DNA of 64,000 nt from sequence record MW879341.1, one strand, 5' to 3'. The first letter of the stretch is position 1, and each line of letters starts with the position of its first letter. The position numbers and the translations under genes are program-made. The notes beneath the pieces were generated by a model. That model did no database searches. It saw only the letters and a list, made by a program, of their open reading frames with translations, and was not told the DNA's origin. Of this stretch, positions 45,746-60,593 are shown one piece after another.

Positions 45746-46450
45746 ATGAACATGGAATTTTCGAGAGACCTCGCTAGAGTTACGCACACGTTTGAGTTTA
45801 TCACCGCTGTGGCGTATTTGCATGACCACTATCCTCACCACAAGACAGACACACTAAAAGATCTGTTGAACGGTGACTACTATAGCGATAAACGCTGTGG
45901 TCAGCTTATTACCCATATGGACGTCGCGCTGGCACTGTGTATCGTAAATGATACCGTACCATGCTGGGACGAGGGTAGACTCTTTTATACTGCGTTCAAA
46001 GGGATACCACATCCACGCTCTGACTATACCAGTCTGAATAGTCCTAACTTTAAGACTATCCGTTGGTTGGGTGAGCAGTTAGCCAAAGAAGTAAATCGTT
46101 ATCAGAATGCTGCTGTGTCAGTGAACTCTGTCCTGCGCAAGATCGATACCGATGTAGCATTGTACGGTAGTAACCGCACAGTCGCGTATTGGAATGATCG
46201 TCGTGATCAGAACTGCACGTTCATCATTAACACACTACGCAATATCCTGGTACAAGGTCGCCATCTTAAACGTTACTGGGAATCTCTGTTCTGGTTTTTA
46301 CCGAAGGACAACGAGAACTATACACTCCCTCTTACGTTTAAGCGGGTTACTGTGCCAGGTGTGCCCAATGCTGTGAAAGTATACGTGCGTAGCAAGAGAC
46401 ACAAACTCTGTCTCTGCACGCGTAACAGTTATCTCATTCTAGGTGCATAG
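45746..46450 (+). CDS. Hypothetical protein
   Basis: Long ORF; start uncertain (45746 or 45752). Confidence 0.6.
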   Translation: MNMEFSRDLARVTHTFEFITAVAYLHDHYPHHKTDTLKDLLNGDYYSDKRCGQLITHMDVALALCIVNDTVPCWDEGRLFYTAFKGIPHPRSDYTSLNSPNFKTIRWLGEQLAKEVNRYQNAAVSVNSVLRKIDTDVALYGSNRTVAYWNDRRDQNCTFIINTLRNILVQGRHLKRYWESLFWFLPKDNENYTLPLTFKRVTVPGVPNAVKVYVRSKRHKLCLCTRNSYLILGA

Positions 46451-46453
46451 TAA

Positions 46454-47074
46454 ATGATTAAACCACAAGCTTCATGGGTCAACGCCTTACTGCGACTGAT
46501 TCCACTTGCAGCGATCGAGCGTACCGGCTCTCGCAGCGTAGGAAACTCTACAACGACACTGATCACCGATATCCAACCAAGTGGGTACCTCAGTGATCTA
46601 CTCGTGCGTATGAACGTACCAGACGGTATTACCGCCAATGAAGCGAGTGATTTGATCGAATGGATTAATACGTTCACCAATCTCGAAGCCACACTGGTGA
46701 CCTTCGACTACATGACAGCCGACGACACGCCTTATCGACTCTACGGTCTTACCGTGAACCATGTAACTCTCTGGTTCCTCGGTAACGTGCCGGAGGCTAA
46801 CGCCATTTACCAACTTACTGAAGCGGGTGCTGTTGAAGTACCCGCTAAACAATCAGGTACCATCGTCGACGACGGTGTAGCTGTAGAGGTATTGTCCGTA
46901 CCATCAAACCCTAATCCTGAAGTAGCCATACCTGACAGTGGGCGGGAAACGTGGTTTGATAAAGTAGGTGCTATACCTGACGACCAACGCGAGTGGTTAC
47001 TCACTCAACTCGAAACAGCATTTGAGCGTATTGACAGGAAGGACCTGTTCGACGAACTCTCTGCTGAACTTTAA
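46454..47074 (+). CDS. Hypothetical acidic protein (206 aa)
   Basis: Tiled ORF. Confidence 0.65.
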   Translation: MIKPQASWVNALLRLIPLAAIERTGSRSVGNSTTTLITDIQPSGYLSDLLVRMNVPDGITANEASDLIEWINTFTNLEATLVTFDYMTADDTPYRLYGLTVNHVTLWFLGNVPEANAIYQLTEAGAVEVPAKQSGTIVDDGVAVEVLSVPSNPNPEVAIPDSGRETWFDKVGAIPDDQREWLLTQLETAFERIDRKDLFDELSAEL

Positions 47075-47092
47075 TAAATAAGGAATCAAACC

Positions 47093-47560
47093 ATGAAAAC
47101 CAAATCAATCTTAGCTGTTGCACTGACCGTCGCTCTGTGTGGTTTTGCCACTACCGCTGACGCCAAAGGTTGGGAGAGTGGATACTCTCAGGGTGAGAAC
47201 ACCTACCAGACCAAAACCACTAATGGTAAGAACGACGTTACGTTGTATTGTAGCGGTGATGCTGAAGCTCAGACTTTCTTCCTGTCTGGTAAAGCACCTG
47301 CTCCAATCGCATCAGGGGCTGCCGAGGACAACATGAAAATGACCATGCAGATTGATGGTCACGATTATGCCGTTCCGTTTGCGGCTAAATCCTATAAGAG
47401 CCAGGCAGATTACAAAGCGTTTTGGGAGTCTCTCCGTAACGCTAAGAGTGTAACCATTCTGACCGGCGGTAAAGAATACAAGGTCCCCACCGAAGGTCTG
47501 AAAGCTGCACTGCCTGCCTACGGTAGTCCGGAATTTGAATGTGGGTTAACAACTAACTAA
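47093..47560 (+). CDS. Secreted protein (Sec signal peptide), paralogue A
   Basis: MKTKSILAVALTVALCGFATTADA-K; TAAGGA RBS. Confidence 0.78.
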   Translation: MKTKSILAVALTVALCGFATTADAKGWESGYSQGENTYQTKTTNGKNDVTLYCSGDAEAQTFFLSGKAPAPIASGAAEDNMKMTMQIDGHDYAVPFAAKSYKSQADYKAFWESLRNAKSVTILTGGKEYKVPTEGLKAALPAYGSPEFECGLTTN

Positions 47561-47589
47561 GAGGGACATGCCGTCCCATTGAGGGATAC

Positions 47590-48036
47590 ATGCGAAAGTC
47601 TTTTGTATTACTTCTAGCTTTGCTAGGTACATCAGCACACGCGTCTGGGTGGCAAGCTATTGAGGACAAGCGTGAAGTGCACTATCGGGTTATGGCATCT
47701 GATAGTGCAATGCTAGATATTGGTTGCAGCGCCAACTTTAATGTCATACTCGGTACAACGTTTATCACAAGCTGGAACGGTTCAATTGCCGTGAGACAGT
47801 TCGAGATTGACGATAAGGTATACCCGAACTATTTCAACCCGGGTACACCTGCACCGACACTCAGCACGTATAACACATTTTGGAATGCGTTCAGGAGTGC
47901 TAAAGAGATCGTCGCCTTAACCGGTGAAGGTAACTTTAACATACCTGTGCAAGGTATCCGAGACGCAATCCCTTCTACCGACAGCAATAAGTTCATTTGT
48001 CGTCCGGTAGATACGAAAGGTGTTCTGGTACTATAA
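47590..48036 (+). CDS. Secreted protein (Sec signal peptide), paralogue B
   Basis: MRKSFVLLLALLGTSAHA-S; shares GW, CS, FWxxxRxAK, LTG and FxC with paralogue A. Confidence 0.75.
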   Translation: MRKSFVLLLALLGTSAHASGWQAIEDKREVHYRVMASDSAMLDIGCSANFNVILGTTFITSWNGSIAVRQFEIDDKVYPNYFNPGTPAPTLSTYNTFWNAFRSAKEIVALTGEGNFNIPVQGIRDAIPSTDSNKFICRPVDTKGVLVL

Positions 48037-48037
48037 C

Positions 48038-48077
48038 AGGGAGGCTTCGGCCTCCCTCATCACTAACTTCTTTTTTT
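48038..48077 (+). terminator. cUUCGg hairpin terminator with delayed U-tract
   Basis: agggaggc-ttcg-gcctccct ... ACTTCTTTTTTT. Confidence 0.78.
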
Positions 48078-48087
48078 GGTATTTAAA

Positions 48088-48507
48088 ATGATCAGTGACG
48101 CACAGTTCGACGCAATCGAACGCAATGCACCTCAGGTTGCGATTAAAGGGTATATTGACGAAGACCAGAAAACGCGTACTGGTTATGCTTTCTTAGCGCT
48201 CGACTTGCTGTCGCGCTTGCCGTACCACTTTACGTGGGGTGTGAGCTATCCGACAGTTGAAGAGTTGGCTGTAGCGCAGGATGGTCTGATTGTGCCAGAT
48301 GCTGGTCCAGAAGATACCATCTACAAAATCTATGACCTGCTTGGTAAGGCGATGTTCTTACCGAGTGGTGCAGCAGACTGGCGTATCCTGAATATGCTTT
48401 CTGCTGCTGGTTATCTCGTAGCGCGTAACTTCAGTCAGCATGAGGACGATGCTTACTGGGTGCGTACAATCCGTGGTCATTTCGTAGTCTACCCACCGGT
48501 GGTGTAA
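48088..48507 (+). CDS. Hypothetical protein
   Basis: ATG 48088. Confidence 0.6.
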   Translation: MISDAQFDAIERNAPQVAIKGYIDEDQKTRTGYAFLALDLLSRLPYHFTWGVSYPTVEELAVAQDGLIVPDAGPEDTIYKIYDLLGKAMFLPSGAADWRILNMLSAAGYLVARNFSQHEDDAYWVRTIRGHFVVYPPVV

Positions 48508-48508
48508 A

Positions 48509-49177
48509 ATGGATGAATTTTCATTAGAGGCATGGACACTAAAAAGAACATTCCGCTATACGCTGATTTGTCAATGCATTATCGACGGCTTACAGCAAGT
48601 GGAAGGGACTTCAAAGGACGAAACCGTAGCTAAGTACCTGTCTCGCATTTCTAAGCGTGACTACACAGACGTTGACGTTCGTCTGATTATGGGTGCTGCC
48701 TCTAACGTGCAAGAGCGCGAGGCGTTAGAGAAAATGTCAACCTATCTTGGCGCTATTAACCGTACTGACATTAACGGTTCAATTGAGGCTGGGGTAGCTA
48801 AAGGACTCAACCCACTCTGGCTGGGCCTGGTTGCTGAATACTACCGTGATATGAATAAGTATTACGCTGAGTGTGAAGCTCTGCTCGTCAGTTATAAGCA
48901 GATGTTAGACTCCCTGCCGGATTTACCGGAAGGTTCTGATCTAACTGAAGTTGTTGGATGGTTCAGTAACCCAGAGCAGCCGGAAGCTGTGACGAAGTTT
49001 ATTGATGATATCCAACGTCACTTTGAAATGGTACCCGGTGCATTTATCGTACCCAGTGCGTCAATCTGGCCACTGAGTAAATACATTGTAGTCCGTACCC
49101 TCGATACACCAGACGGCACTGTTGTTACAATTGTTACCCATAAGGGACTGTTGTCACTCAATGCTGTCCCTAACTAA
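48509..49177 (+). CDS. Hypothetical protein (222 aa)
   Basis: Coupled to the upstream gene; N-terminal SLE-A. Confidence 0.65.
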   Translation: MDEFSLEAWTLKRTFRYTLICQCIIDGLQQVEGTSKDETVAKYLSRISKRDYTDVDVRLIMGAASNVQEREALEKMSTYLGAINRTDINGSIEAGVAKGLNPLWLGLVAEYYRDMNKYYAECEALLVSYKQMLDSLPDLPEGSDLTEVVGWFSNPEQPEAVTKFIDDIQRHFEMVPGAFIVPSASIWPLSKYIVVRTLDTPDGTVVTIVTHKGLLSLNAVPN

Positions 49178-49185
49178 CAGGAGGA

Positions 49186-49830
49186 ATGATGAGAAAGTTA
49201 GTATTTATGCTAGCATCTCTCCTACTACTTTACGGTTGTACAGTTCCCGTCTCGGCAGATGTAAGTAAGGTAGCCGATTACTACGGTACACCAATCACTG
49301 AGTTGTATGAGTCTATGCCAGCAAATAAACGCATACAGCTTACTGGTGAGTACGATAAAGATAAGCCGATCTTTATGTTGGTCTACCCGACGTATTTAGC
49401 TGACGCAGCCGCAGCAGAGCGTGAAGGGTCCACGGTGCGCAATATCTTCATTGATAACTACGCTCGCCGTGCTACACGTTTGCTTACTGATGAAAACCTC
49501 CCCGTCTTTAAAGACATGTTGAAACGAAATACATTGCTCGCCCACACCGAACAAACGGAGCATCACCTGCAAGTAGGTTATTGTAAGGATAGTGGGATAC
49601 TTTCGTCAGGGGACTATTTCTATTGCTTTGAATACGAAGGCAACATCTATAGGGTAATCGATAAGGTGGACTTCTTAGATAAGGAGACACACCAGATCAG
49701 ACGCGCCTGGGTGTACATGTTTTTCAAAGAGGGTAAGTTTGACGATTTCTTTAGGCCGGGTCCGTATGGGGTTATTCCAAAACCTCGCATCAGCGGTTAC
49801 GGGTTCGAACCTAGGATCTTTATCAACTGA
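49186..49830 (+). CDS. Lipoprotein
   Basis: MMRKLVFMLASLLLLYG-C lipobox; AGGAGG RBS. Confidence 0.72.
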   Translation: MMRKLVFMLASLLLLYGCTVPVSADVSKVADYYGTPITELYESMPANKRIQLTGEYDKDKPIFMLVYPTYLADAAAAEREGSTVRNIFIDNYARRATRLLTDENLPVFKDMLKRNTLLAHTEQTEHHLQVGYCKDSGILSSGDYFYCFEYEGNIYRVIDKVDFLDKETHQIRRAWVYMFFKEGKFDDFFRPGPYGVIPKPRISGYGFEPRIFIN

Positions 49831-49833
49831 TCA

Positions 49834-49870
49834 CAGTAGCTGCCTTCACGGGCAGCTACTGCTTTATGCC
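49834..49870 (+). terminator. Hairpin + TTTATGCC terminator
   Basis: cagtagctgcc-ttcacg-ggcagctactg-cTTTATGCC. Confidence 0.75.
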
Positions 49871-49882
49871 CTCAATCTAAAG

Positions 49883-49904
49883 TCAGATATATATTACCTC
49901 TATG
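49883..49904 (+). promoter_or_regulatory. Phage early-type promoter
   Basis: TCAGATATATATTACCTCTATG contains the exact TATATTAC. Confidence 0.72.
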
Positions 49905-49936
49905 CAACTAACCTTGCATAACTAAGGAATACAAAT

Positions 49937-50812
49937 ATGTCTAGACAAAGAAATCCAGCTGATGATTACCTAAAGATTCATAAACTCAATGGTCGTAGTG
50001 ACTTCATAGGGAGACTGCATGCAAAACTAAGTTGGGGATGGCCGATTTACACAAAAGAGGGAATGGACGTTGTAACGCTCTCTAACGCACAGGAACGGTC
50101 TTTTGACCTGAGGGTGGGTGATTGGGTAGTTGTGTGGAATAATCGTCTCTGGTTTCCATACACGTCCTATAAAGAGGTCGGTGTGTCCACTACCTTCGCT
50201 AAGTTTAAAGTTGGCGAACATATTCACTCAATGTTGTCAGTTGATGATCCTAAATCCAAAGATCACCTCTTTACTACAGTGAGTGCGGTATGGGCACATT
50301 CGTTGGTTGAGTCTAACATTCGACCAGTGAGTTCCGATAAACAAAGAAAGGCATTCGCCCGTTGGATTGGTGACAGTCCAATTAGAGCAAGAATGCCGTT
50401 GACTGCACTGACTGCATGTAAGACAGATGTCATCGATAGCTTCATTAACCACTTTAACGAGCATGAGAATGAGCGTTATTTGGTTACGGGCTACAGCAGT
50501 CTCGGTGATTTCGAGATTCAGATACGTTTGGCCTTCGCACACCTCCGTACAAACACGGTACTGCGTTATTTATGGAATAAGCATAGATACTGCGGTCTAC
50601 AGTACAAAACGCTCTACAGGTCGATTGGAGCACTGTATAGCGATTCACTCTGTGTCGTGTCAGTACCGAGAGTCTCAAGGGAAGCTACCCAAGCAGAGGA
50701 TTTCTTCGCTAGCGTATTCCCTGAAGATGTCCTGGGTATTAAAATCACTAAGCCGTTACATGTGTGTATTCGCACAGGTTGCATTAGTGAGTTGAGTGGG
50801 ACTGTGATTTGA
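49937..50812 (+). CDS. Hypothetical basic protein (291 aa)
   Basis: TAAGGAATAC leader. Confidence 0.65.
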   Translation: MSRQRNPADDYLKIHKLNGRSDFIGRLHAKLSWGWPIYTKEGMDVVTLSNAQERSFDLRVGDWVVVWNNRLWFPYTSYKEVGVSTTFAKFKVGEHIHSMLSVDDPKSKDHLFTTVSAVWAHSLVESNIRPVSSDKQRKAFARWIGDSPIRARMPLTALTACKTDVIDSFINHFNEHENERYLVTGYSSLGDFEIQIRLAFAHLRTNTVLRYLWNKHRYCGLQYKTLYRSIGALYSDSLCVVSVPRVSREATQAEDFFASVFPEDVLGIKITKPLHVCIRTGCISELSGTVI

Positions 50813-50909
50813 TAGTGTAGTGGGTGATGCTTGTGTGTCGCCCACAGCTGCGGTAATTAAAAACAGACCTGTGTAATGTAGTGTCAATGTTAACTGTTGG
50901 AGCATTACC

Positions 50910-51830
50910 ATGCGCTATGGTGAGGAACTACGACTTCGTTTATCTATGTTGGAAGAACAGATAAACACCTTTATGAATCTTTCGGGTGCATTCTCTCAGA
51001 TGTTCCCAACCATGAACAACCCGATGTACTCTAGCATGGACGGTATGCGTGCTCGTGTGAGTGGTATGCGTGCCGAGCTGTTGGAGCATGAGTTCAATTT
51101 CGGTAGTGCTATACACGAGAACTACCTTGACGATTACAGTATGATCCGTAAGTTAAAGGAGATTACTAAAGATGACTCTATCGAGTTATCTGAAATCGTC
51201 TGGATGGGAGAAGTGGAACCGAAACAGCGGATTAGTGATGGAACTCTGACGGCACTAGCTCACCGCACGTTGTGGGTGCTTGATGGTGCTATCGAGTTCT
51301 CTCTCCCTGCTGTGGAGTTCAAATACCACCCGCTGTACGGAATTGAACAAGAAAGCGTTATGTCTATTCCGTCGATGTCGGTTGAGCATCGCCACCGTGC
51401 GGCCCGTGGCGTTATCCCACGTATCGGCATCAACGACTTCATCGATGTACTCAACAAACACACCGGTCTCACCTTAACCTATGAGGAATGGGTGGCAGAT
51501 GAGGAACAGAGTGTTCGTGACGATTGGATGCGTTGTGCTCCGAAATCGTTATCTGCTATTCGCCATGCGGTGTTCGATCGGTACAAGGATTTCGAGTACA
51601 GTAGCGATACGGAAAAGCGTGACTTCTTCCGTAAGTGCGACTACGTCAATAATGACATGTGTCGCACACTGAGCGGTTGGCCTACCTCGAAACATGTGGA
51701 CGCCTACAATAGAGCGCGTGAGTCTTATCGTCGCTACTATTTCAAACTAAAAGAAATTGGCTTGGAGGAACTCTGGGCAGATGTTGAAATCACCGAGCCA
51801 CCTACACAGGAAACTAATGATGCGTCTTGA
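50910..51830 (+). CDS. Hypothetical protein (306 aa)
   Basis: GGAG RBS. Confidence 0.7.
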   Translation: MRYGEELRLRLSMLEEQINTFMNLSGAFSQMFPTMNNPMYSSMDGMRARVSGMRAELLEHEFNFGSAIHENYLDDYSMIRKLKEITKDDSIELSEIVWMGEVEPKQRISDGTLTALAHRTLWVLDGAIEFSLPAVEFKYHPLYGIEQESVMSIPSMSVEHRHRAARGVIPRIGINDFIDVLNKHTGLTLTYEEWVADEEQSVRDDWMRCAPKSLSAIRHAVFDRYKDFEYSSDTEKRDFFRKCDYVNNDMCRTLSGWPTSKHVDAYNRARESYRRYYFKLKEIGLEELWADVEITEPPTQETNDAS

Positions 51831-52230
51831 AACCTTTGAAAACATCCTGCACCGTAAGCGTGTAGATCGTGTGACTGAGGCGGTTGAGTTTATGGATGAG
51901 TTTGTACGTAAAGGTACAGACCCTGAGAAGCTCAAAGAGATCAGCTATGCGTTCACTACCCGCTATCGTAACAACATCGTCGTCAATGGTGCTCTGGTGC
52001 CGGCTGTGGCGAAGTCGTTTAAAGCGCAGGGCTATGAGTTGTCCACGGTTAAGGTTAGCGGAACTATCTGCTATGCCACCGTGAACATCCACGGCGATGA
52101 CGTTGTGGTGTATCGCGACGAACGCGCTGCCCGCATGTTGGCTAAGCGTTATCTCGATAACAAACTCAGTGGCTACCATCCGTGGGTTCAGAAAGTACTG
52201 ACTCCCCTGATTAGTAAGTTACTTGGGTAA
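51817..52230 (+). CDS. Hypothetical protein
   Basis: AGGA RBS then ATG 51817/51820. Confidence 0.65.
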   Translation: MMRLETFENILHRKRVDRVTEAVEFMDEFVRKGTDPEKLKEISYAFTTRYRNNIVVNGALVPAVAKSFKAQGYELSTVKVSGTICYATVNIHGDDVVVYRDERAARMLAKRYLDNKLSGYHPWVQKVLTPLISKLLG

Positions 52231-52238
52231 TTTACACT

Positions 52239-52268
52239 GGTAGGACTTCGGTCCTACCTTTTATGCCG
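52239..52268 (+). terminator. cUUCGg hairpin + TTTTATGCCG terminator
   Basis: GGTAGGAC-TTCG-GTCCTACC-TTTTATGCCG. Confidence 0.78.
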
Positions 52269-52309
52269 TTTCATCATTTTTTCAGATATATATCACATTC
52301 ATGAATAAA
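52266..52309 (+). promoter_or_regulatory. Extended early-type promoter, copy 1
   Basis: CCGTTTCATCATTTTTTCAGATATATATCACATTCATGAATAAA. Confidence 0.7.
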
Positions 52310-52331
52310 CAAACAAAATGGAGTAACCACC

Positions 52332-52550
52332 ATGCTTAAATCTAGCTCAGAGTTCTTCGGGTTCTTTGTTGCTCTGTATGCAGCCTACTGTGCTCAGGAT
52401 GCTGCGAACGACTCAATGGAAGTAGGTGAATCTGAAGTTAGTACCCAGGCTCGTGTGTTAGTGCGTCTGGTTGTTGCATCCGTCACATTTGCTGGTTGTG
52501 CGGCTGTAGTAAAAGGTTTCAACGATTACCTGTTCGGTAACGATCAGTAA
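52332..52550 (+). CDS. Small two-helix membrane protein (72 aa)
   Basis: Two hydrophobic segments; GGAG RBS. Confidence 0.7.
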   Translation: MLKSSSEFFGFFVALYAAYCAQDAANDSMEVGESEVSTQARVLVRLVVASVTFAGCAAVVKGFNDYLFGNDQ

Positions 52551-52583
52551 TATACTCTCACTCATTTATTAAGGAATACCATT

Positions 52584-53063
52584 ATGTCAATCTCTAAAGA
52601 AACTATCTTCACCGCAGTTGGCGTTGTTGCTCTGTTAGGTCTGGGTGCTTGGATCGGTTGTAAAGTTGCTGAGAAAGTAAACGAAGTGATCAAAGAACCA
52701 GAAGCAAAGGACGAAACACCTGAAGCAGCGCCAGTTGTCAACTATGCTGACATCTTCGCCGTAGTGTGGGGCACAGTGTCATTCGAAGAAGCGCTGTGTG
52801 CTGATACTGAGGACGGCATGAGTCCTGACCTGTATGGTGCATTACTGGATGTTGTCTTAGATTACATCCACAATGCAGATCTGTCTGATCGCCATAACCG
52901 TAAACACTTCCCGTTCTTAGATTCCGTTGAGAATGTCGAAGTGCGTACTCGCCTGAAAGAAATTGCAGGCAAAGCGATCAACGTTATCTACAGGGATAAC
53001 AGTGACGTCGATAGTCTGAAGGCGGTAACGCTGGACGATATCAAAAACGCATTAGCGTCATAA
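52584..53063 (+). CDS. N-terminally membrane-anchored acidic protein (159 aa)
   Basis: IFTAVGVVALLGLGAWIG TM; TAAGGAATACC leader. Confidence 0.72.
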   Translation: MSISKETIFTAVGVVALLGLGAWIGCKVAEKVNEVIKEPEAKDETPEAAPVVNYADIFAVVWGTVSFEEALCADTEDGMSPDLYGALLDVVLDYIHNADLSDRHNRKHFPFLDSVENVEVRTRLKEIAGKAINVIYRDNSDVDSLKAVTLDDIKNALAS

Positions 53064-53106
53064 CAGCATAAAAGCCACTCTACCCAAAAGGTAGAGTGGC
53101 TATGCT
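53064..53106. terminator. Bidirectional terminator
   Basis: CAGCATAAA-agccactctacc-caaaa-ggtagagtggct-ATGCT between convergent genes. Confidence 0.78.
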
Positions 53107-53115
53107 TACGCCTTT

Positions 53116-53439
53116 TTATTTTTGTTCTGGTACATTGAACTGAATAATCAGGAGTCCTTCCAGAGCAGTACAACTACCGCTCAGTTGGATTTGAATCAGG
53201 TTGGTGTAGTTAGAGTTAGACAGCATCGTCGAATGGTTAGCACCACTGTAGACTACCGTCGCACCCAGTAAACTATATTCACCTTCCACGCCCAAACGCC
53301 AGTCGTCACCAGTAGTCTTACGAATGATCTCAAAGAGTTCGCGAGGTACTGCTGCTTCTGGGTCGGCTTTCACCTTCAACAGTTCAGCGTAATCAGCTGA
53401 GAAGTCGAAGGGGTATGCGTACACATATGCTGGATACAT
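53116..53439 (-). CDS. Stand-alone C-terminal domain of the paralogous virion-protein family (107 aa)
   Basis: YAYPFDF, LLGATVVYSG and ALEGLLIIQFN match only the C-terminal half of the array members. Confidence 0.68.
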   Translation of the reverse strand: MYPAYVYAYPFDFSADYAELLKVKADPEAAVPRELFEIIRKTTGDDWRLGVEGEYSLLGATVVYSGANHSTMLSNSNYTNLIQIQLSGSCTALEGLLIIQFNVPEQK

Positions 53440-53445
53440 TATCTA

Positions 53446-54354
53446 TTACCCCGGGATGACTTCGTCGTCTTTTGGCGGAATCGTCAAATCGAACGGTTCG
53501 TTGAAGTGCAGCATTAACAGACCGCGCATTTTCACACTGTCTTTAGACAGCTGAATCGCAACCACGTACTTGTAAGTAGGGTTACCGGCAATGGCAGATG
53601 AGTTCAGTGCTGCGTAAGTGATCTTCGCACCTGAGAGGCTGTAGTCGCCAGCAGCCATAGAGAATGCAGGGTTAACATATTTCTTCAGGATGTCGCAGAT
53701 TGACTGGTCTACCTCGGATTTAACCGTCAGCTTAGACAGGGTAGCAAATTCCGGCGTGAAGCTAATCGGATAAGTCGCTACGTAAGCCTGTTGAGCTGTA
53801 AGATCTGCCGATGGGTAGACGAAGCCCGACAGATCAACTTTCTTTACTGTGTCGGTAGCAACATAGCCAGTCAGTGAACATTTGAAATCAAAGCCCACAT
53901 TAAACTGGTAGTTGTCTGCGATTGGGTCGACACGGATGGTAAAGGTGCTGCCGTCATCTGGGGTAGTTACGTCACCCTCGATGATTTCGTTAGGCGACAA
54001 GCCCATACCATAGTAAATGTTGATGAACGGGACCAGCTGTGACTTTTTGGTGATCTTAGGGATAGCCATCACCGAGTCTTTACCACCCTTACGGACAGAG
54101 ACATACGTTTCAAACTTCTCGCGATTATACAGCAAGTAGTTAGAACCGCCGTAGGCCACACCGTCGATACCAGTTACACGGATAGCAGTATCTTTGGTAG
54201 TGGCAGAACCACGCCAAGTGCCAGTCAGTGAAGCTGGGCGTGATACTGTTACATTGGTATCGGGAACCATGGTTGGAGAAATACCATTCAGTGAAGAATA
54301 GTTAACCAACAGTCGACGGATGAAGGACTCGCCCCAATAGTTACGTCTTAACAT
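53446..54354 (-). CDS. Paralogous virion/tail-associated protein, array member (302 aa)
   Basis: YGGSNYLLYNR; LSGFVYP; GLLMLHFN. Confidence 0.72.
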   Translation of the reverse strand: MLRRNYWGESFIRRLLVNYSSLNGISPTMVPDTNVTVSRPASLTGTWRGSATTKDTAIRVTGIDGVAYGGSNYLLYNREKFETYVSVRKGGKDSVMAIPKITKKSQLVPFINIYYGMGLSPNEIIEGDVTTPDDGSTFTIRVDPIADNYQFNVGFDFKCSLTGYVATDTVKKVDLSGFVYPSADLTAQQAYVATYPISFTPEFATLSKLTVKSEVDQSICDILKKYVNPAFSMAAGDYSLSGAKITYAALNSSAIAGNPTYKYVVAIQLSKDSVKMRGLLMLHFNEPFDLTIPPKDDEVIPG

Positions 54355-54366
54355 TTAAGGCTCTCC

Positions 54367-55263
54367 TTATGCGTTATACGGCAGGAACAACTGAATACCA
54401 CCACGGCCCGCTGAAGCGGCGTTAGCGCAATAAGTAGCATTCAGGTTGATAACTGCCATTGCGTTCGTGTCGTTGTAGTAGACATCTGCGGGGTCTGCGC
54501 CTGCCGGTGTGTTATTAAGAGACAGGTTAGCGTTGTAGATGTTGAACGAACGATTAGACGTGTTGTTATATTCCCACGGATCTCCCGTGAAATCACGCAA
54601 CGCGGCTGCAAGTGCCGACCACGAAGCTGAGCTGTTCTGACTGTATACGGTCATCAGAGAAGGCTTGATAATCGTGAAGTCTAAGCCGCGATAGTAGGTG
54701 GTAAAGTCGTGTCGCGGGTCAACGGGTGGTACCAAGTTTGCCAGGGTAGATTCCTGACGAGATACCATCGTTTCAAGACTCGGCGTACCACGGAACCACT
54801 GCACCGACGGAATCTTACCAATGAACGCCAAACTGGCTGTGTTGGATGGAATACCCAACACGCTGGTTTGCGTCCAGCCCGTATAGTTGGCGTTGTTGTT
54901 AAAGTTACCGTTCGTCCACTCCGATGCGTCAATCGACATACCGTACAGCGAGTTAAACAGTGAGCGGAGAGCTTCGTACGTGGTAGCGGTATAATGAGTA
55001 AGGACAACTTTAGTATCCTTAAACAGATTCGCCAGGTCGATACGGTTGTAGCGGAAAGTAATCAGTCCGCGATAACCGGCACCCTGCACACCACGCATCA
55101 CTACGGAGGTGTTGAACGGCGCTGCCTCGGTTGGAGTCAGTACCGTTGGACCTGCGTGAACCACAAAGGTGTCTTTCGACACCTTGTAGGGCAGATCAGG
55201 GTTGTCCTTATTAATCAGATCATACAGCAGATCTAAGGACGGTTTCTGATATAAGCCAGACAT
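54367..55263 (-). CDS. Paralogous virion/tail-associated protein, array member (298 aa)
   Basis: GYRGLITFRYNRIDL; YYRGLDF. Confidence 0.72.
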   Translation of the reverse strand: MSGLYQKPSLDLLYDLINKDNPDLPYKVSKDTFVVHAGPTVLTPTEAAPFNTSVVMRGVQGAGYRGLITFRYNRIDLANLFKDTKVVLTHYTATTYEALRSLFNSLYGMSIDASEWTNGNFNNNANYTGWTQTSVLGIPSNTASLAFIGKIPSVQWFRGTPSLETMVSRQESTLANLVPPVDPRHDFTTYYRGLDFTIIKPSLMTVYSQNSSASWSALAAALRDFTGDPWEYNNTSNRSFNIYNANLSLNNTPAGADPADVYYNDTNAMAVINLNATYCANAASAGRGGIQLFLPYNA

Positions 55264-55277
55264 TAAGTCTACCTCTC

Positions 55278-56120
55278 TTAACGGTTGTTGTAGTGGTAGT
55301 AAGCCACACCGACGATGTTGTCAGCGACGATACCGGTCTGGACAAACACACGGTCGTAATCGCGGTTTGCACCGGCTACGCTGGCCGTGGTTGCATCAGA
55401 GATATAGTTACTGTTCGCAGCACGCGGGTAGTCTGGTACACCACGGTCGGTCAGAATCTGACGGAGCGAATCCCAGTTGTTACTGTAGTTCGCCCAGCTA
55501 CCGAAGTAGTTCTTGTAGTCACTGAAGTCGATACCCCAGGTCAACAGGCCGGCAGAGTTCAGGTCATCCACTTTCTTATCGGCGTGATTCAACACGGTCA
55601 ATGCGGTGGCGGTGATCTGAATACCCAGGTCTGGTTTACCACGATATACGCGCAGATTGACTGCTCCGATATATGCCGGTGAGGTCGGAACTGCGGTGAT
55701 ATTTGAGTTCTCGATTCGGTCTGCCTGACTAGGGTAGCTGAAGCCATTGTTCTGAATATCCCAGGTATTCAGATTCAGACCAACTTGCAGACAGATCTGT
55801 GGTAGCATCTGGTGGATGTTACGTCCGGCATAGTTCTGCAACTGAACGTAGTTGTTCAGACCGTTCAGAGTATCGCTTGGCAGGATAACCTTGGACAGAT
55901 CGATACGGTTGTAGAACACCACAAACGAACCCATGTATCCGTCACCCTGCTGACCACGAATACGCGCTGAGGTATTATGCATACCGTTCGCAGCGTTAGG
56001 CGTCACCGCAGTGATCGCCTCAATCGTACAGTTGTCGTTAGACAGGGGTGGTTGGATCTGGGGGTTAGCTGCCGCAATCAGGTCATAGACCAGAGCACGG
56101 GAGTCCTTACTGTATAACAT
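55278..56120 (-). CDS. Paralogous virion/tail-associated protein, array member (280 aa)
   Basis: GYMGSFVVFYNRIDL; GVAYYHYN. Confidence 0.72.
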   Translation of the reverse strand: MLYSKDSRALVYDLIAAANPQIQPPLSNDNCTIEAITAVTPNAANGMHNTSARIRGQQGDGYMGSFVVFYNRIDLSKVILPSDTLNGLNNYVQLQNYAGRNIHQMLPQICLQVGLNLNTWDIQNNGFSYPSQADRIENSNITAVPTSPAYIGAVNLRVYRGKPDLGIQITATALTVLNHADKKVDDLNSAGLLTWGIDFSDYKNYFGSWANYSNNWDSLRQILTDRGVPDYPRAANSNYISDATTASVAGANRDYDRVFVQTGIVADNIVGVAYYHYNNR

Positions 56121-56130
56121 AACTTACCCC

Positions 56131-57012
56131 TTAACCGATTTCAGACGGGTCGAGTGGTTTGCTGTAGTGCAACAGCATCTCACCACGAACGTTGGTGGTT
56201 TTGGTCGTATCGAGTGTCAGCGCGATAACGTACTGATAACGCTCGTTGTTGGCGTACTGGCGATCCTTAGCAGGACCGTTGTAAGCTACAGTAGCGTTAG
56301 TCAGGTTAGCCGGACCGGCCGCCAGACTGTCACCGATAACCCACGGGTTAGCAACTGACGCGTACGGCTGTTTACCATTGATGATGGCCAGGAGTGAGTC
56401 ATCCAGCTTCGCACCCACTGCAATACCTTTAAGGGTATCGTAGGAATCGCTGAAGTCAGCACCATAGACCAGCGCCTGTCCGAGACGAACAGTGGTGTCT
56501 TCAGATACTGGGTAGACGATACCATCCAGTGAGGTTTTCTGAACGATGTCGTCCAGTACATCATCACCTTTGGTCAGGAAGAAGGTCCACTCACCAATCC
56601 AACCCAGCGAATCCGGTGCAGCTTTCAGAGTAACCTGAGCTACCTCGTTTTCATAGGTAATCGGTTGGTCAACGATGTCACCCGGTACGAAGTTCAAACC
56701 GTATACGGTATTGAACGCCGATGCCAACTTGGCAGTGGTGTCGGGTTGAGGACCTTTGATACGATCGCCGATCATGGTAACCAGGTCGTTGAGGTCCAGA
56801 CGGTTATAAAGGAATACGTTGGTACCAGTCCAGGTAGCACCGGCATTAGCAGTGATACGGATAGCAGTATTCTGACTGATATCCTTACCGTTCCACTTGC
56901 CATTCGTCGGCTGAGGCTTACTGAACGTCATTTGGGACATGACAACGTTCGATCCATTTAAGGAGTTAACGTTATCAATGATAGTTTGTTTAACGTCACT
57001 ATAGAGTGCCAT
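56131..57012 (-). CDS. Paralogous virion/tail-associated protein, array member (293 aa)
   Basis: WTGTNVFLYNRLDL; LDGIVYP; GEMLLHYS. Confidence 0.72.
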   Translation of the reverse strand: MALYSDVKQTIIDNVNSLNGSNVVMSQMTFSKPQPTNGKWNGKDISQNTAIRITANAGATWTGTNVFLYNRLDLNDLVTMIGDRIKGPQPDTTAKLASAFNTVYGLNFVPGDIVDQPITYENEVAQVTLKAAPDSLGWIGEWTFFLTKGDDVLDDIVQKTSLDGIVYPVSEDTTVRLGQALVYGADFSDSYDTLKGIAVGAKLDDSLLAIINGKQPYASVANPWVIGDSLAAGPANLTNATVAYNGPAKDRQYANNERYQYVIALTLDTTKTTNVRGEMLLHYSKPLDPSEIG

Positions 57013-57021
57013 TAGTCAACC

Positions 57022-57819
57022 TCATAAGTAATAATGCAGATAGATCGTGCCGACATAATTCGGATCATCGACCCCGGTGATAGTCGAAACGCGCGCGTAT
57101 TTCTTATTAGCGGTGGTCACTTGCGAGGTATTCGTAAAGTGAGTTAACTGCGCACCACTAAGTTTGATATCTCCTAAACCACGCTCTTTCAGTATCTGAC
57201 GTAACGCAGCATTATTAGCATTGTTAGTCAACACGCCCGCCGGAGTTGTGCGGATAGCGTATTGGTCAGAACTGCAATCCCAACCGTAGGTCAGGAGATC
57301 AAGGCACTTACGTCCGTCTGGGTCTTGAGGGTGTTTAAGCACCGTCAATTGACGCGCACGCAGGAGAGCCAGGTTACGAACCATTGGGATAATCTTAACC
57401 AATACACGCCCTGTGTACTGAATGGACTTCGACCCAGGCGTTAACCAGAAATTCGTACCACCCGTATACACGTCGGTGCGGAAATCGTTGGGGTCTAAGT
57501 TCAAACCGTAGTTGGCATTGATCAGTTGAGACGCCTCACGCATTGTCATACTTCGGTTAACCGATAAGACAGGCGGTTGGTTCTTAAAGAGCGTTTGTAA
57601 ATCCAGTCGGCGCACGTTGACGTTGATATCACCAACCAAACCATGCGATTGTCTACCAGTCAAGGTTACAGTCGTATTCGGTTTAGTGGCACTACGTTCA
57701 TTGAGTGCTGTGACTTTACGGACGCGTACGTTGTTCGGGGTCAGTGGAATCTTTGGATTGTACGCAGTGTTGATACTATCGCAAAGGTTCTCCAGCGGCG
57801 TTTTAGAATAAATAGGCAT
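57022..57819 (-). CDS. Paralogous virion/tail-associated protein, array member (265 aa)
   Basis: GLVGDINVNVRRLDL; GTIYLHYY. Confidence 0.72.
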   Translation of the reverse strand: MPIYSKTPLENLCDSINTAYNPKIPLTPNNVRVRKVTALNERSATKPNTTVTLTGRQSHGLVGDINVNVRRLDLQTLFKNQPPVLSVNRSMTMREASQLINANYGLNLDPNDFRTDVYTGGTNFWLTPGSKSIQYTGRVLVKIIPMVRNLALLRARQLTVLKHPQDPDGRKCLDLLTYGWDCSSDQYAIRTTPAGVLTNNANNAALRQILKERGLGDIKLSGAQLTHFTNTSQVTTANKKYARVSTITGVDDPNYVGTIYLHYYL

Positions 57820-57833
57820 TCGTTACCCCTTTA

Positions 57834-57855
57834 GTGGGGAGCTTTCACTCCCCAC
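57834..57855 (-). terminator. Hairpin inside the array (partial terminator or processing stem)
   Basis: gtggggag-ctttca-ctccccac between 57862 and 57819. Confidence 0.45.
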
Positions 57856-57861
57856 CGCTGA

Positions 57862-58794
57862 TTACGCGTTGTAGTGCAGGTAGAGATCGCCCGCGAAGTT
57901 GGTGCACTTGGTGTCATCCAGAGTGAACACAACTACGGTGTTGAAGTTGGTGTTAGCGTTTGCCTGCACTTCCAGTTCAACCGGGTCAGTAGACGGGGTT
58001 GACGGGTCGGCACGAGTAGAACCTGCGAACTTGATGGTCGCGCCACGAACGTTGTAGTCCGCTGCGTCATCACCGGCGTGCCACAGTTCAGGCACAACTT
58101 TGTTCAGCTCTTTGGCCAGTGCGGTATCTTCGATAGCGCCGCCAGTTGCCAGGGTAGACAGGAAGGTACGGATGCTGTTGCAGTCTACGCCGTAGGAGTA
58201 GATGTAAGCCTGACCTTTCATGGTACCGTCAACTGGGTAGTGCAGACCATCCAGACGAGTTTTGGTTACAACCAGGTTCAGACGCTCACCAACGTCAGCA
58301 TCTTCGCCGACAGTAACATCCAGCACACCGAAGTAAGCCAGAGAGTCATCAGCGATAGTGATGGTAGCGTGAGCAACCGGTGCAGCTTCGGTCAGTTCAG
58401 CAACAGTTGCACTTACCACTTCTTTCTTGTCGATGGCCAGGCCGTAACGGGCATTCAGGCGGTCTATCAGATCCAGGGTGGTTTTAGCGCCTTTAACATC
58501 GAGGTTAACGGCAATGTTCTTGAACAGTTTGCTGATGTCCAGACGATCGTACGCCAGGGTTACGGAACCCACGTATGGAGAACTACGAGTCGCGGTACAC
58601 AGCAGTTCGGTGTTCCAGTCTTTCTTGACTTCACCTTCCGCTGGCTCACCTTCAGTTGGTACAACCACAGCCGGCTTACCGAACACAACCTGAGTGGTGT
58701 TGATATCGATCGAGAGTTTAGTATCAGGATCGGTGTTGGTTTCGTTAACCAGATCCAGGACCAGAAGGTTGGATGCTTTGTTATACTTACCCAT
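57862..58794 (-). CDS. Paralogous virion/tail-associated protein, array member (310 aa, strongly optimised codons)
   Basis: PYVGSVTLAYDRLDI; LDGLHYP; GDLYLHYN. Confidence 0.75.
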   Translation of the reverse strand: MGKYNKASNLLVLDLVNETNTDPDTKLSIDINTTQVVFGKPAVVVPTEGEPAEGEVKKDWNTELLCTATRSSPYVGSVTLAYDRLDISKLFKNIAVNLDVKGAKTTLDLIDRLNARYGLAIDKKEVVSATVAELTEAAPVAHATITIADDSLAYFGVLDVTVGEDADVGERLNLVVTKTRLDGLHYPVDGTMKGQAYIYSYGVDCNSIRTFLSTLATGGAIEDTALAKELNKVVPELWHAGDDAADYNVRGATIKFAGSTRADPSTPSTDPVELEVQANANTNFNTVVVFTLDDTKCTNFAGDLYLHYNA

Positions 58795-58806
58795 TGTTCA
58801 TTTCCT

Positions 58807-59652
58807 TTAGATGTTTAAGGGACTGTTGTATTGAATGTAGACGCGCCCTGCCAAGTTAGTGCAATACAATGCTAACTCAACAATGCAGACCGTATCGAAG
58901 TACGGGTCGGTAGGGAGATCTGACGTATTTGGCCCATGGTAAACCACAGTGGACTCAAACAAGTTCCAGTTGGCCGGTGAACGGAAGATCGTCCATTTGT
59001 CACCCGTTACCGAGAGGATGTTCATCAACTCAGCAGTGGTGATGTTGGTACCACGTTTAGCATACGGTCGCATCGCTTCGGTGAAGTCAGTGCGATATGC
59101 GTAAATCGGTGCCTGTCCGTTATTCGTATTGAAGTACGGATAGTCGAAGAGGCTAGCAGTGGATTGCGGCTCGATTACATCTGACAGAATCGCGTCGCCT
59201 GCCACAGTACGCATGGTTAGCGTACCAACCCAAAGCAATGAGTTATCAAGTAACTCAAACGTCACACGGTTGTTTACTTTATCGACTGGTGCTAAACGCA
59301 CTTCATCTTTAGTAAGCTCGATACCGGTGAATTGCTTCAGAGCGCCCAAACAGTCGTGGTTATTTTCCACAGTGATTGGAGAGAGTGGCAGTTGGAAATC
59401 GTTCTCACTGTTTACACCGACGATCAGCGAGATATCGTAACGGTTGTAGAACAGGTCGACAAATCCGTAAACCTTTGCGTCGTTACCAGCACGCAACTGG
59501 ATGGCAGTGTCCTTATCTGGGAACTGCGCCAGTTCTTCAGGTTCCAGTGCACGAGGACCTAAGAACGTCATCTCATCAACGGTAAGGCTGACTTTATAGA
59601 GAGCGTTCAGGTAATCGAGGATATACTGTTTTCCATTAGGATACAGGAACAC
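58807..59652 (-). CDS. Paralogous virion/tail-associated protein, array member (about 281 aa)
   Basis: GGAGG RBS then GTG 59652 (MFLYPNGKQYILDYLN); YGFVDLFYNRYDI; GRVYIQYN. Confidence 0.72.
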   Translation of the reverse strand: MFLYPNGKQYILDYLNALYKVSLTVDEMTFLGPRALEPEELAQFPDKDTAIQLRAGNDAKVYGFVDLFYNRYDISLIVGVNSENDFQLPLSPITVENNHDCLGALKQFTGIELTKDEVRLAPVDKVNNRVTFELLDNSLLWVGTLTMRTVAGDAILSDVIEPQSTASLFDYPYFNTNNGQAPIYAYRTDFTEAMRPYAKRGTNITTAELMNILSVTGDKWTIFRSPANWNLFESTVVYHGPNTSDLPTDPYFDTVCIVELALYCTNLAGRVYIQYNSPLNI

Positions 59653-59653
59653 G

Positions 59654-60469
59654 TTAAACCTCCGGAATCCAAGGAATAAGTAAAGACCCAACCCAGTCAG
59701 CAGTTTCTAATTTGTCAATACGTAATACCATCGTATCGCCAGACTTCTCCTGCGTACAGGTACCGCCTTTGATGTTGACTTCACCAATCGCTACAGCACC
59801 GGCGTCTTTGTATACAATGTTGAGGTTAACCACACCATTGATCGCATCAGCCAGATCGGCGTTAGTAGCACGCCCGCCATAGAAGTTGGTAAATGCGCTT
59901 TGGATCTCAACGAAGTTATACCCCCACGCGACATATTCCAGTCGACGCTTACCCGTTTTAGAGAATGGTTCTTTAACAATGTCCAGACCTTGTGCAGTCA
60001 CTAAGGTGGCAATGTTCGGACGAGACTTCACCACACGCACGTCAACAGAACCCGACCACATCAAGCAGCTTGGTTTTGTTTCCAGCGTGACGATATAGTC
60101 ATCACCGAGGTCTTTTACCGAGACATCCACAATGTCGTCTTTGGTTAAGAAGACACCGTAGGTTTTATAGAATGCCGGAAGGATATCAGACAACCACGAT
60201 GCGCCTGTGAACTGAACCAGTAGGGTCTGATTCTCAAACGCGTGGTCTAACGAAAGACGTTGATATTCTACATCTACCGTACCCTGATACCCCTGCCGCA
60301 TAAGAGCATAAACACGAACTCGGGCATTTTGCAATGCACCGGGGGTGGTTATCTCCTGTGGAATCCCAAAGCCTACATTATTCAGACTTAGGGGATTGAC
60401 GACGATGGTGTTCTCCGTATTAATGGTATCCAACATCGTGTCGGTGGAGCTTTTCTTGTACATACTCAT
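59654..60469 (-). CDS. Paralogous virion/tail-associated protein, first array member (271 aa)
   Basis: GYQGTVDVEYQRLSL; AWGYNF. Confidence 0.7.
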   Translation of the reverse strand: MSMYKKSSTDTMLDTINTENTIVVNPLSLNNVGFGIPQEITTPGALQNARVRVYALMRQGYQGTVDVEYQRLSLDHAFENQTLLVQFTGASWLSDILPAFYKTYGVFLTKDDIVDVSVKDLGDDYIVTLETKPSCLMWSGSVDVRVVKSRPNIATLVTAQGLDIVKEPFSKTGKRRLEYVAWGYNFVEIQSAFTNFYGGRATNADLADAINGVVNLNIVYKDAGAVAIGEVNIKGGTCTQEKSGDTMVLRIDKLETADWVGSLLIPWIPEV

Positions 60470-60529
60470 AGTGAACCCTTCAATGTGAATAGTAGTAGGG
60501 CAGTGTTCTTCAACATATTATCGGGGATA

Positions 60530-60573
60530 CCGTTTCATCATTTTTTCAAATATATACCACCTCTATGTATAAA
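60530..60573 (+). promoter_or_regulatory. Extended early-type promoter, copy 2
   Basis: CCGTTTCATCATTTTTTCAAATATATACCACCTCTATGTATAAA. Confidence 0.68.
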
Positions 60574-60593
60574 CAAAGAAGGAATATACAGAA

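Follow-up and report, generated by a model that had tools for sequence, protein, structure and literature searches.

Introduction

The closest described relatives of the genes reported here belong to the phages Goslar, phiKZ and SPN3US. A 2026 preprint (10.64898/2026.04.21.720040) describes DUF7941 as a protein family specific to chimalliviruses, the nucleus-forming jumbo phages, and proposes that its members chain head-to-tail into long host-finding filaments, a 'fibre cloud', with a linker peptide as the docking element. According to this account, head-to-tail dimers are predicted by AlphaFold, negative-stain EM shows filaments of purified Goslar gp22, and each virion contains about 580 copies of gp22 and about 2140 of gp23; other members carry fusions to large domains predicted to bind or cut carbohydrates, and DUF7941 density was not seen in the Goslar baseplate maps. 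In phiKZ, gp127 is a protein of the outer peripheral baseplate and lies where the gp139 band of each star lobe ends (PMC13250141), and the preprint reports that a gp126-gp127 dimer fits the outer-baseplate density (10.64898/2026.04.21.720040). In SPN3US, gp139 to gp144 were found in virions by mass spectrometry, with gp141 among the most abundant virion proteins at >300 copies per virion; the authors placed the 'paralog family B' in the head because its members are still detected in tailless particles, and a table comment, 'head ejection?', accompanies the abundant gp141, gp143 and gp160 (PMC5105663, PMC5694885).

Here we describe nine tandem DUF7941 genes in a 64,000-nucleotide stretch of sequence record MW879341.1 (hereafter the window), which derives from the 272-kb jumbo phage pEa_SNUABM_54 of Erwinia, and in which every gene carries the annotation "hypothetical". 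The array is an unannotated example of the known DUF7941 system, and g9 is its only unexplained member.

Organization of the array

A first-pass annotation of the window had proposed an array of nine genes, eight coding for two-domain proteins and one for a C-domain alone, and nine tandem minus-strand ORFs with matching Pfam assignments are indeed present between positions 53116 and 60469 (Table 1). Successive genes, designated g1 to g9, are separated by 1, 12, 42, 9, 10, 14, 12 and 6 nt, and each is preceded by a Shine-Dalgarno-like sequence. The g2 start is most likely the GTG at 59652 rather than the TTG at 59691, because the GenBank CDS and the orthologue in the metagenomic relative L002 are both of the resulting length.

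Table 1. Features of the DUF7941 array and its borders (window coordinates).
Feature	Coordinates	Strand	Description
g1	59654..60469	-	271-aa DUF7941; Pfam PF25613 E 1.1e-43, profile 1-260 of 276
g2	58807..59652	-	281-aa DUF7941, GTG start; Pfam E 3.2e-37
g3	57862..58794	-	310-aa DUF7941, probable major subunit; Pfam E 4.2e-61
g4	57022..57819	-	265-aa DUF7941; Pfam E 3.8e-49
g5	56131..57012	-	293-aa DUF7941; Pfam E 1e-58
g6	55278..56120	-	280-aa DUF7941; Pfam E 4e-55
g7	54367..55263	-	298-aa DUF7941; Pfam E 7.3e-40
g8	53446..54354	-	302-aa DUF7941; Pfam E 1.4e-32, profile 25-275
g9	53116..53439	-	107-aa stand-alone DUF7941 C-domain; Pfam E 1.8e-13, profile 182-275 only
Hairpin, 13-bp stem	53073..53101		directly after g9; 13 pairs, 7 of them GC
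Divergent intergenic region upstream of g1	60470..60593		conserved in three relatives

The hairpin, which sits between the array and a converging plus-strand gene, is probably a terminator closing the array transcript. At the opposite end, a conserved block upstream of g1 (60510-60524, minus strand, with TATG inside) is a candidate late promoter; a motif of this type also precedes a 2183-aa virion gene, with weak statistics. Clusters of small plus-strand genes flank the array, and a shared AT-rich motif precedes each of them; the AT-rich block at 60542-60560 (plus strand) is repeated at 52278-52296 (two copies against 0.01 expected). The tail sheath and tube genes are about 4 kb upstream on the strand of the array, and a late-strand array within an early-gene region is plausible as judged from this layout.

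The genome encodes chimallin (record 224676-226784; phrog_4795, E 9.5e-85), and split RNA polymerase beta subunits are encoded in the window. The tblastn matches listed for DUF7941 all come from records as large as jumbo-phage genomes (about 197-307 kb), and there were no matches in 14 control bacterial genomes. A second DUF7941 cluster elsewhere in the genome adjoins a homologue of the phiKZ baseplate wedge protein gp128, and codes for N-domain fusions of 889-1013 aa together with N-only proteins ending in a linker-type peptide. The major capsid gene stops at a TGA, and the next 19 codons in frame form a tail that is similar to the C-terminal end of the N-only DUF7941 proteins.

Domain architecture and structural relatives

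All nine products match Pfam PF25613 (DUF7941) with E-values from 1.8e-13 to 4.2e-61 and scores of 51-207 bits, well above the curated gathering score of 27 bits. All nine also match phrog_1037, annotated as 'virion structural protein' and filed by PHROGs in 'head and packaging'. The N- and C-domain motifs recognized in the first-pass annotation recur in the alignment consensus, and its description of the members as highly diverged holds as well, with significant BLASTP pairs being about 19-35% identical (E down to 1e-30).

Structure predictions were made for g3 and g9. In the AF2 model of g3 (pLDDT 91 overall), an N-domain (residues 1-165), referred to as the 'socket', is followed by a flexible linker (about 166-192) and a small alpha/beta C-domain (193-310), and each full-length array protein is assigned this three-part plan. 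Residues 1-160 and 193-310 have pLDDT values above 90, the segment between them (161-190) has values of 65-76, and the pTM of 0.56 indicates that the two domains have no fixed arrangement. The linker, referred to as the 'plug', carries a short conserved peptide of the type L-x-G-L-x-Y-P. There are a few departures from this plan: the g4 linker motif is of the LTVLxHP type, the g1 C-domain is atypical in having no terminal LHYN-type motif, and g8 has a divergent N-terminus and, in the alignment, a conserved C-terminal extension of 17 residues.

The modelled N-domain of g3 aligns with phiKZ gp127 (PDB 9xqd) with a VIA-align Z of 10.4 and an rmsd of 2.9 A over 135 of 150 residues, the next-best match outside the family having a Z of 5.0; gp127 is also the sole significant Foldseek match of g3 (E 9.6e-5). 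A profile built from the nine array proteins finds gp127 at E 8e-26 in a match that spans both domains. Of the array members, g3 matches Goslar gp22 best (27% identity, E 2e-12), and their linkers align. Homology to gp127 and gp22 supports the earlier suggestion of virion proteins with a common docking domain, here the N-terminal one. The accompanying suggestion of a variable beta-sandwich head did not survive: both domains are mixed alpha/beta in the g3 and g9 models, the C-domain is compact with motifs conserved across the paralogues, and PDB searches with the full g3 model and the isolated C-domain (best Z 3.1) returned no trimeric beta-helix, beta-sandwich or similar known receptor-binding fold as in classical phage tail fibres or tailspikes.

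Orthology and selection

The 'paralog family B' of SPN3US (gp83, gp138-154, gp161 and gp237; PMC5105663, PMC5694885) is the same family as the array. For six array members, one-to-one orthologues are present in both SPN3US and ChrisDB and follow the same gene order, and by this sequence comparison the array is old. In a maximum-likelihood tree, g1 is the orthologue of SPN3US gp139 and ChrisDB gp156 (support 100/99), g2 of gp140 and gp157 (99/97), g3 of SPN3US gp141, and g6 of gp144 and gp161 (100/99), while g5 clusters with SPN3US gp143 and ChrisDB gp160, with g8 as its sister (92/88 and 95/92); support is at least 92/88 for all pairings and groupings of array and SPN3US proteins. The SPN3US gp numbers were assigned via published masses (32.6 kDa for gp141, with 31.9 kDa also used). 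The tree identifies g8 as a lineage-specific duplicate of the g5 type and resolves no orthologue of g7 in SPN3US or ChrisDB. The complete nine-gene array recurs in two metagenomic relatives, L002 and L003, and purifying selection acts on each of its genes (dN/dS 0.05-0.26). The fastest-evolving members are g7 and g8, with g7 sharing 62% identity with its L002 orthologue at a dN/dS of 0.24.

These patterns bear on the idea of a receptor-binding repertoire, raised in the first-pass annotation; such a repertoire would be fast-diversifying, with each variable C-domain recognizing a different host surface structure. The low identity among the paralogues and the faster evolution of g7 and g8 are as such a repertoire would have it, and the Goslar proposal does tie the family to host recognition. 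However, the C-domain is one small alpha/beta fold throughout, with conserved motifs and no likeness to known receptor-binding folds in the PDB search; the paralogues are ancient, with one-to-one orthologues in the same order in Salmonella and Erwinia phages and dN/dS values that are low across the array; and the probable binding domains are on separate N-domain fusion proteins. We therefore regard a repertoire of this kind as very unlikely. The DUF7941 paralogues of SPN3US-type phages are instead old, syntenic and individually conserved, and not a recent expansion.

Codon usage and abundance

Codon bias within the array is strongest in g3, in which CTG accounts for 87% of leucine codons, all arginine codons are CGY and all glycine codons GGY, as the first-pass annotation had recognized in describing this gene as codon-optimised. 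It ranks 2nd of 60 window ORFs in the C-ending share of two-fold codons. In a composite of four codon measures for 216 ORFs over 195 kb, a 181-aa N-only paralogue ranks 3rd and g3 ranks 4th. The unequal stoichiometry suggested earlier gains support from the orthology of g3 with the abundant SPN3US gp141, and g3 is probably the major, or bulk, subunit. A design for very high expression of one full-length and one N-only member is seen in the pEa_SNUABM_54 lineage too.

The stand-alone C-domain protein

The ninth product was correctly predicted to consist solely of the C-domain: it starts at the first C-domain segment, and has neither the N-domain nor the docking peptide of the linker. It matches phrog_11456 (E 4e-8) and, among the paralogues, is closest to the g8 C-domain (33% identity); AF2 predicts a complete domain that folds autonomously (pLDDT 93.9, pTM 0.87). 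Stand-alone C-domains occur elsewhere, with gp300 (FDH98_gp218) of the Erwinia phage RAY and Ea35-70 W6ATN8 (phrog_11456) resembling g9 in being C-domain-only proteins of about 110-115 aa (TM 0.73-0.78, about 26% identity), and a 106-aa phage protein being another example. The RAY gene, an independent C-only gene, belongs to another lineage and has a tail fibre gene and an N-only paralogue as its neighbours; it is not at an array end.

Is g9 a functionless remnant of a truncated paralogue? Its reduction to a C-domain, its place as the last (3') gene of the array, its reading frame, which is that of g8 with two stop codons in between, and the lack of any similar C-only gene in the SPN3US family would all fit such an origin. 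But in three diverged relatives (49-79% identity) g9 is an intact ORF with a ribosome-binding site of its own, the L002 and L003 orthologues having 107 and 112 aa, and its dN/dS values are 0.12 (dS unsaturated) and 0.17 (one saturated pair); moreover, its predicted fold is complete, and independent stand-alone C-domains, the one in RAY/Ea35-70 being 115 aa in length, exist with a PHROG of their own. A remnant is therefore quite unlikely. Having neither socket nor plug, g9 is outside the published plug-socket scheme, and we speculate that it supplies a C-domain in trans to plugs that lack one, or regulates chain growth. If it were the cap or decoy that the first-pass annotation suggested, it would act as such without the linker peptide to which the published model assigns docking. 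Stand-alone C-domains are a recurrent DUF7941 variant, of which we found no discussion in the available portions of the family literature, including the Goslar preprint (10.64898/2026.04.21.720040).

Proposed filament assembly and probable virion location

We consider it likely that the array encodes eight full-length and one C-only chimallivirus DUF7941 proteins that form head-to-tail filaments outside the virion. By homology to the described relatives, the linker and C-domain of one protomer would dock onto the N-domain of the next, and the proteins would therefore chain into flexible filaments on the virion exterior, with a role in host finding; the earlier suggestion of fibres or a chain-like polymer agrees, through homology, with the current published model of the family. 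The filaments may begin at the peripheral baseplate, and possibly at the capsid too, and would bear the N-domain fusions of the second cluster, whose large C-terminal parts are probably host-binding. Because the other full-length paralogues are old and individually conserved, they probably have distinct, non-interchangeable positions or form distinct filament types. We note that the detection of family members in tailless SPN3US particles conflicts with anchoring at the baseplate only.

The same detection, made in particles of two different mutants, raises an alternative in which the proteins are head components, either internal and ejected with the DNA or decorating the capsid, rather than baseplate-anchored filaments. 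Its other attractions are the 'head ejection?' comments, the PHROGs category, and the in-frame tail behind the capsid TGA, which would permit capsid attachment. Self-assembling filaments could, however, co-purify with tailless heads, as we infer from the gp22 filaments, and the fusions to predicted carbohydrate-binding or -cutting domains reported for Goslar fit an external location. Attachment to the outside of the capsid is compatible with external filaments, such that the true rival is the internal, ejected version only, and we think the head-component alternative unlikely.

A more elaborate version of the filament reading, which we hold to be improbable, assigns every ancient paralogue a set position within an ordered hetero-filament; any protein ending in the short L-x-G-F/L peptide could prime a socket, and g9 would complete or lock the junctions made by plugs that have no C-domain. 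Candidate primers would be the N-only subunits, which are abundant, the baseplate wedge protein through its tail, and the major capsid protein in a read-through form; with primers on both capsid and wedge, filaments would grow from the head and the baseplate. If true, growth from two origins would reconcile the SPN3US and phiKZ data, and g9 would be a new kind of accessory subunit.

Irrespective of these details, the name DUF7941 virion filament protein can now be given to the products of nineteen genes annotated as 'hypothetical' in this fire-blight phage, including the nine of the array, and they provide constructs for testing the assembly, priming and termination of the proposed filament cloud. 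They are also useful for choosing Erwinia amylovora phages, since the first contact with the host is believed to depend on this system.

Comparison with known systems

Goslar and pEa_SNUABM_54 are both chimalliviruses, and their proteins share the Pfam family and the plan of N-domain, linker and C-domain. The two phages also have in common one full-length and one N-only member that are highly expressed (here as indicated by codon bias), and additional members that extend into large fused C-terminal parts. The Goslar members are scattered, whereas those of pEa_SNUABM_54 include eight full-length and one C-only gene in an operon-like array; and gp22, the only family member for which filaments are shown, is just about 27% identical to g3.

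The N-domain fold of phiKZ gp127 is common to g3, although identity is only 14-16% in the structural alignments, and the N-domain alone is modelled in the deposited structure. Only about three family members are predicted in phiKZ (10.64898/2026.04.21.720040), compared to nine in this array alone. SPN3US is similar in that abundance is skewed to the g3 counterpart, gp141, but its array runs on into N-domain fusion proteins, where the pEa_SNUABM_54 lineage has g7, g8 and g9 instead.

Genome context of the array

The 7.35-kb stretch occupied by the array is 100% identical to Erwinia phage pEa_SNUABM_54 (MW879341.1, 272,635 bp), and adding 62,000 to a window coordinate gives the record coordinate. 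This phage is a phiKZ-like, nucleus-forming jumbo phage, because the window carries two genes for split RNA polymerase beta subunits as well as one for a 2183-aa virion protein that includes a transglycosylase region, and a gene for the nuclear-shell protein chimallin is present in the genome. The window also contains a tail-fibre-like virion protein of 872 aa, followed by a 196-aa ORF that is similar to the C-terminal regions of tail fibres and has an LDGF motif 30 residues short of its C-terminus. A separate 503-aa ORF of unknown function uses CTG for 73% of its leucines and GGY for all glycines, and its product is, from codon usage, probably highly expressed.

Coordinates of features in pEa_SNUABM_54 (L006 and L009 are loci of MW879341.1 outside the window)
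Feature	Coordinates	Remarks
Tail-fibre-like virion protein and following ORF	window 1691-4947 (-)	phrog_2163, phrog_13857
503-aa ORF	window 38406-39917 (+)	phrog_3841
19-nt AT-rich motif, two copies	window 52278-52296, 60542-60560 (+)	TTTTTCAnATATATAnCAC
Nine-gene array, g9 to g1	window 53116-60469 (-)	DUF7941
g8-g9 junction	window 53440-53448	TAA TAG and one sense codon
g3	window 57862-58794 (-)	310 aa
g2, preferred start	window 59652	GTG, 281 aa
Major capsid gene	record 28092-30371 (L009)	phrog_3231, E 1.8e-159
Major capsid gene with in-frame extension	record 28092-30431	TGA, then 19 codons up to TAG
Wedge homologue	record 38532-40742 (L006:533-2743)	phiKZ wedge gp128, PDB 9xqs_C, E 2.5e-118
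Second DUF7941 cluster	record 40754-55057 (L006)	outside window

An array of nine diverged DUF7941 genes

The array is filled by nine minus-strand ORFs (g1 to g9, from the right end leftwards) with gaps of 1-42 nt and a Shine-Dalgarno-like sequence before each, and all are labelled 'hypothetical protein' in GenBank. The first-pass annotation described a tandem array of highly diverged paralogues, and this holds: all nine match Pfam DUF7941 (PF25613; E 1.8e-13 to 4.2e-61) as well as phrog_1037 ('virion structural protein'), and those pairs with a significant match are about 19-35% identical. The N- and C-domain motifs proposed at that stage are present in the alignment consensus, and the ninth ORF (107 aa) indeed corresponds to the C-domain only, with profile coverage restricted to positions 182-275. 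The start of g2 is better placed at a GTG codon (see table). Strong codon optimisation of g3 was likewise confirmed, with CTG accounting for 87% of leucine codons and all arginine and glycine codons being CGY and GGY, respectively. It ranks second among 60 window ORFs when two-fold codons are scored by their C-ending share. With four codon measures combined it comes fourth among 216 ORFs in 195 kb of the genome, in the company of chimallin and the gene for the tail sheath.

On either side of the array lies a plus-strand cluster of small genes, some of them of membrane type, and upstream of both clusters is a near-identical 19-nt AT-rich motif (two copies versus 0.01 expected by chance), which probably serves as a phage promoter belonging to a different temporal class. 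Late promoters of the TATG type are reported in phiKZ, and a conserved TATG-containing block is located 41-55 nt upstream of g1, with a similar block upstream of the 2183-aa virion gene; the four matches to this candidate late-promoter block are not a significant number, as 8 of 100 shuffles reach four. A sigma-70 promoter scan of the array gave five sites versus 9.6 expected from shuffled sequence, which would fit transcription by the phage's own polymerases and is uninformative. A hairpin with a 13-bp stem lies 3' of the last array gene. A late operon between early clusters is a plausible picture.

Orthology, age and selection

In a maximum-likelihood tree, g1, g2, g3 and g6 pair with gp139, gp140, gp141 and gp144 of phage SPN3US and their ChrisDB counterparts, and g5 and g8 group with SPN3US gp143, all with a shared gene order; g8 is sister to g5 and specific to this lineage, and the tree does not settle the placement of g7. 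The SPN3US gene numbers were set by published masses (32.6 kDa for the fourth array gene and 31.9 kDa for the sixth). Because of the tree pairing and this numbering, the codon-optimised g3 is the orthologue of the abundant SPN3US gp141. Virion mass spectrometry of SPN3US defined a 'paralog family B' comprising gp83, gp138-154, gp161 and gp237, with abundances from low to more than 300 copies, the latter for gp141 and gp160 (PMC5105663, PMC5694885, PMC10052503).

The same nine genes occur in the same order in two metagenomic relatives (L002 and L003), the last gene being 107 or 112 aa, and in L003 the distance between the array and the genes for tail sheath and tube is 2 kb. Ratios of dN/dS are 0.05-0.26 across all nine genes. 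Recent tandem duplication is ruled out by the cross-genus orthologues in the tree. A receptor-binding repertoire had been suggested, and the retention of all nine genes in both relatives and the low dN/dS values speak against it; the paralogues are old, individually maintained parts and not a diversifying repertoire.

Domain folds

An AlphaFold2 model of g3, built with 44 homologues as input (mean pLDDT 91), contains an alpha/beta N-domain (residues 1-165), a low-confidence linker (about 166-192, pLDDT 65-76), in which residues 181-187 form the conserved peptide LDGLHYP, and an alpha/beta C-domain (193-310). The pTM is 0.56, and the two domains therefore have no fixed mutual position. Only one PDB structure matches significantly: the N-domain of the outer peripheral baseplate protein phiKZ gp127 (9xqd), which aligns with the g3 N-domain at Foldseek E 9.6e-5 and, by VIA-align, over 135 residues at Z 10.4 and 2.9 A rmsd; the next-best match reaches Z 5.0. 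A sequence profile of the nine paralogues also picks the gp127 chain, covering both domains (E 8e-26).

The C-domain folded alone, as in g9, gives pLDDT 93.9 and pTM 0.87. No known fold was recovered for it by Foldseek against the PDB with the full model, nor by VIA-align over 48,161 chains, whether the query was the full model or the domain by itself (best Z 3.1). Its matches in a viral model library are many DUF7941 C-domains together with a 115-aa and a 106-aa stand-alone protein. The 'beta-sandwich head' originally envisaged is absent, because the C-domain is alpha/beta in the g3 and g9 models and the structure searches yield no PDB match for it above Z 3.1.

The stand-alone C-domain gene

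The start of g9 coincides with the first C-domain segment, leaving it without an N-domain or linker peptide, and it cannot be a standard filament link. The gene is conserved and subject to purifying selection, and its product is predicted to fold autonomously. An independent C-only gene of 115 aa is present in phage RAY, adjoining a tail fibre gene and a paralogue with an N-domain and no C-domain (N-only); there is none in SPN3US or ChrisDB. Because g8 and g9 share a reading frame and the junctions in L002 and L003 differ, with a single stop each, the arrangement suggests an origin of g9 next to g8, through truncation or splitting. A single read-through gene is ruled out by the consecutive TAA TAG stops and by the differing junctions, and further by the ribosome-binding site of g9 itself.

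A second DUF7941 cluster

Genome-wide there are 20 DUF7941 matches within 19 annotated genes. A second cluster lies directly downstream of a homologue of the phiKZ wedge protein, whose extra C-terminal tail, about 100 residues long, contains the motif LDGL twice, resembling the linker peptide of DUF7941 proteins. The cluster encodes one full-length member, truncated ones, N-domain fusions of 889, 936 and 1013 aa (the remainder without a Pfam match) and a protein in which the N-domain is matched twice in tandem. It further encodes three N-only proteins, 181-187 aa in length, at record 51865-52410, 53468-54019 and 54494-55057. The gene for the 181-aa protein ranks third among 216 ORFs in codon bias; it is paralleled by SPN3US gp160 and by Goslar gp23.

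Proposed filament model and possible anchoring

A preprint on phage Goslar (10.64898/2026.04.21.720040) names the DUF7941 family and terms it chimallivirus-specific, estimates that a virion has about 580 gp22 and about 2140 gp23 copies, and reports that purified gp22 forms filaments. In the AlphaFold prediction described there, the linker and C-domain of one protomer dock on the N-domain of the next, head-to-tail, and the proposal made there is of a 'fibre cloud' that has its anchor at the peripheral baseplate and bears carbohydrate-binding or carbohydrate-cutting fusion members. This head-to-tail model is probably the best explanation of the array. The fibre or chain reading of the first-pass annotation was largely right, apart from its head fold and repertoire. 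In this phage, g3 would be the bulk filament subunit, and the remaining full-length members would occupy defined positions or form distinct filaments. The N-domain fusions would take terminal positions in the chains, because they could accept a linker peptide (plug) while offering none. Most likely, and speculatively, g9 might supply a C-domain in trans at junctions of plugs that lack one, or limit chain growth.

The main uncertainty in our analysis is the site at which chains would be anchored. Data from SPN3US favour the head, family B having been called head proteins because they are still found in tailless particles (PMC5105663, PMC5694885, PMC10052503), whereas those from phiKZ favour the baseplate, where the gp139 band of each outer-baseplate star lobe ends in one gp127 (PMC13250141). 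The major capsid gene ends in TGA followed by 19 in-frame codons, and the encoded tail, ending TTLIGFTPEQVR, resembles N-only DUF7941 C-termini (e.g. TTDLNGFSEDDVKA); it could be a candidate read-through docking tag. In 30,232 residues the pattern L-[DNS]-G-[LFIM] is matched 20 times, and 13 of these occurrences are in these proteins. These peptides are short, and the likeness of the capsid-tail and wedge peptides to those of DUF7941 proteins is suggestive only.

Relationship to known systems

The best tblastn match of g3 in Goslar is gp33 and not gp22, and the best match of gp22 inside the array is g3. The DUF7941 filament system is already described, and the array is an unannotated new member of it; two aspects are modestly new, a stand-alone C-domain that is conserved and a set of paralogues that is ancient and syntenic.
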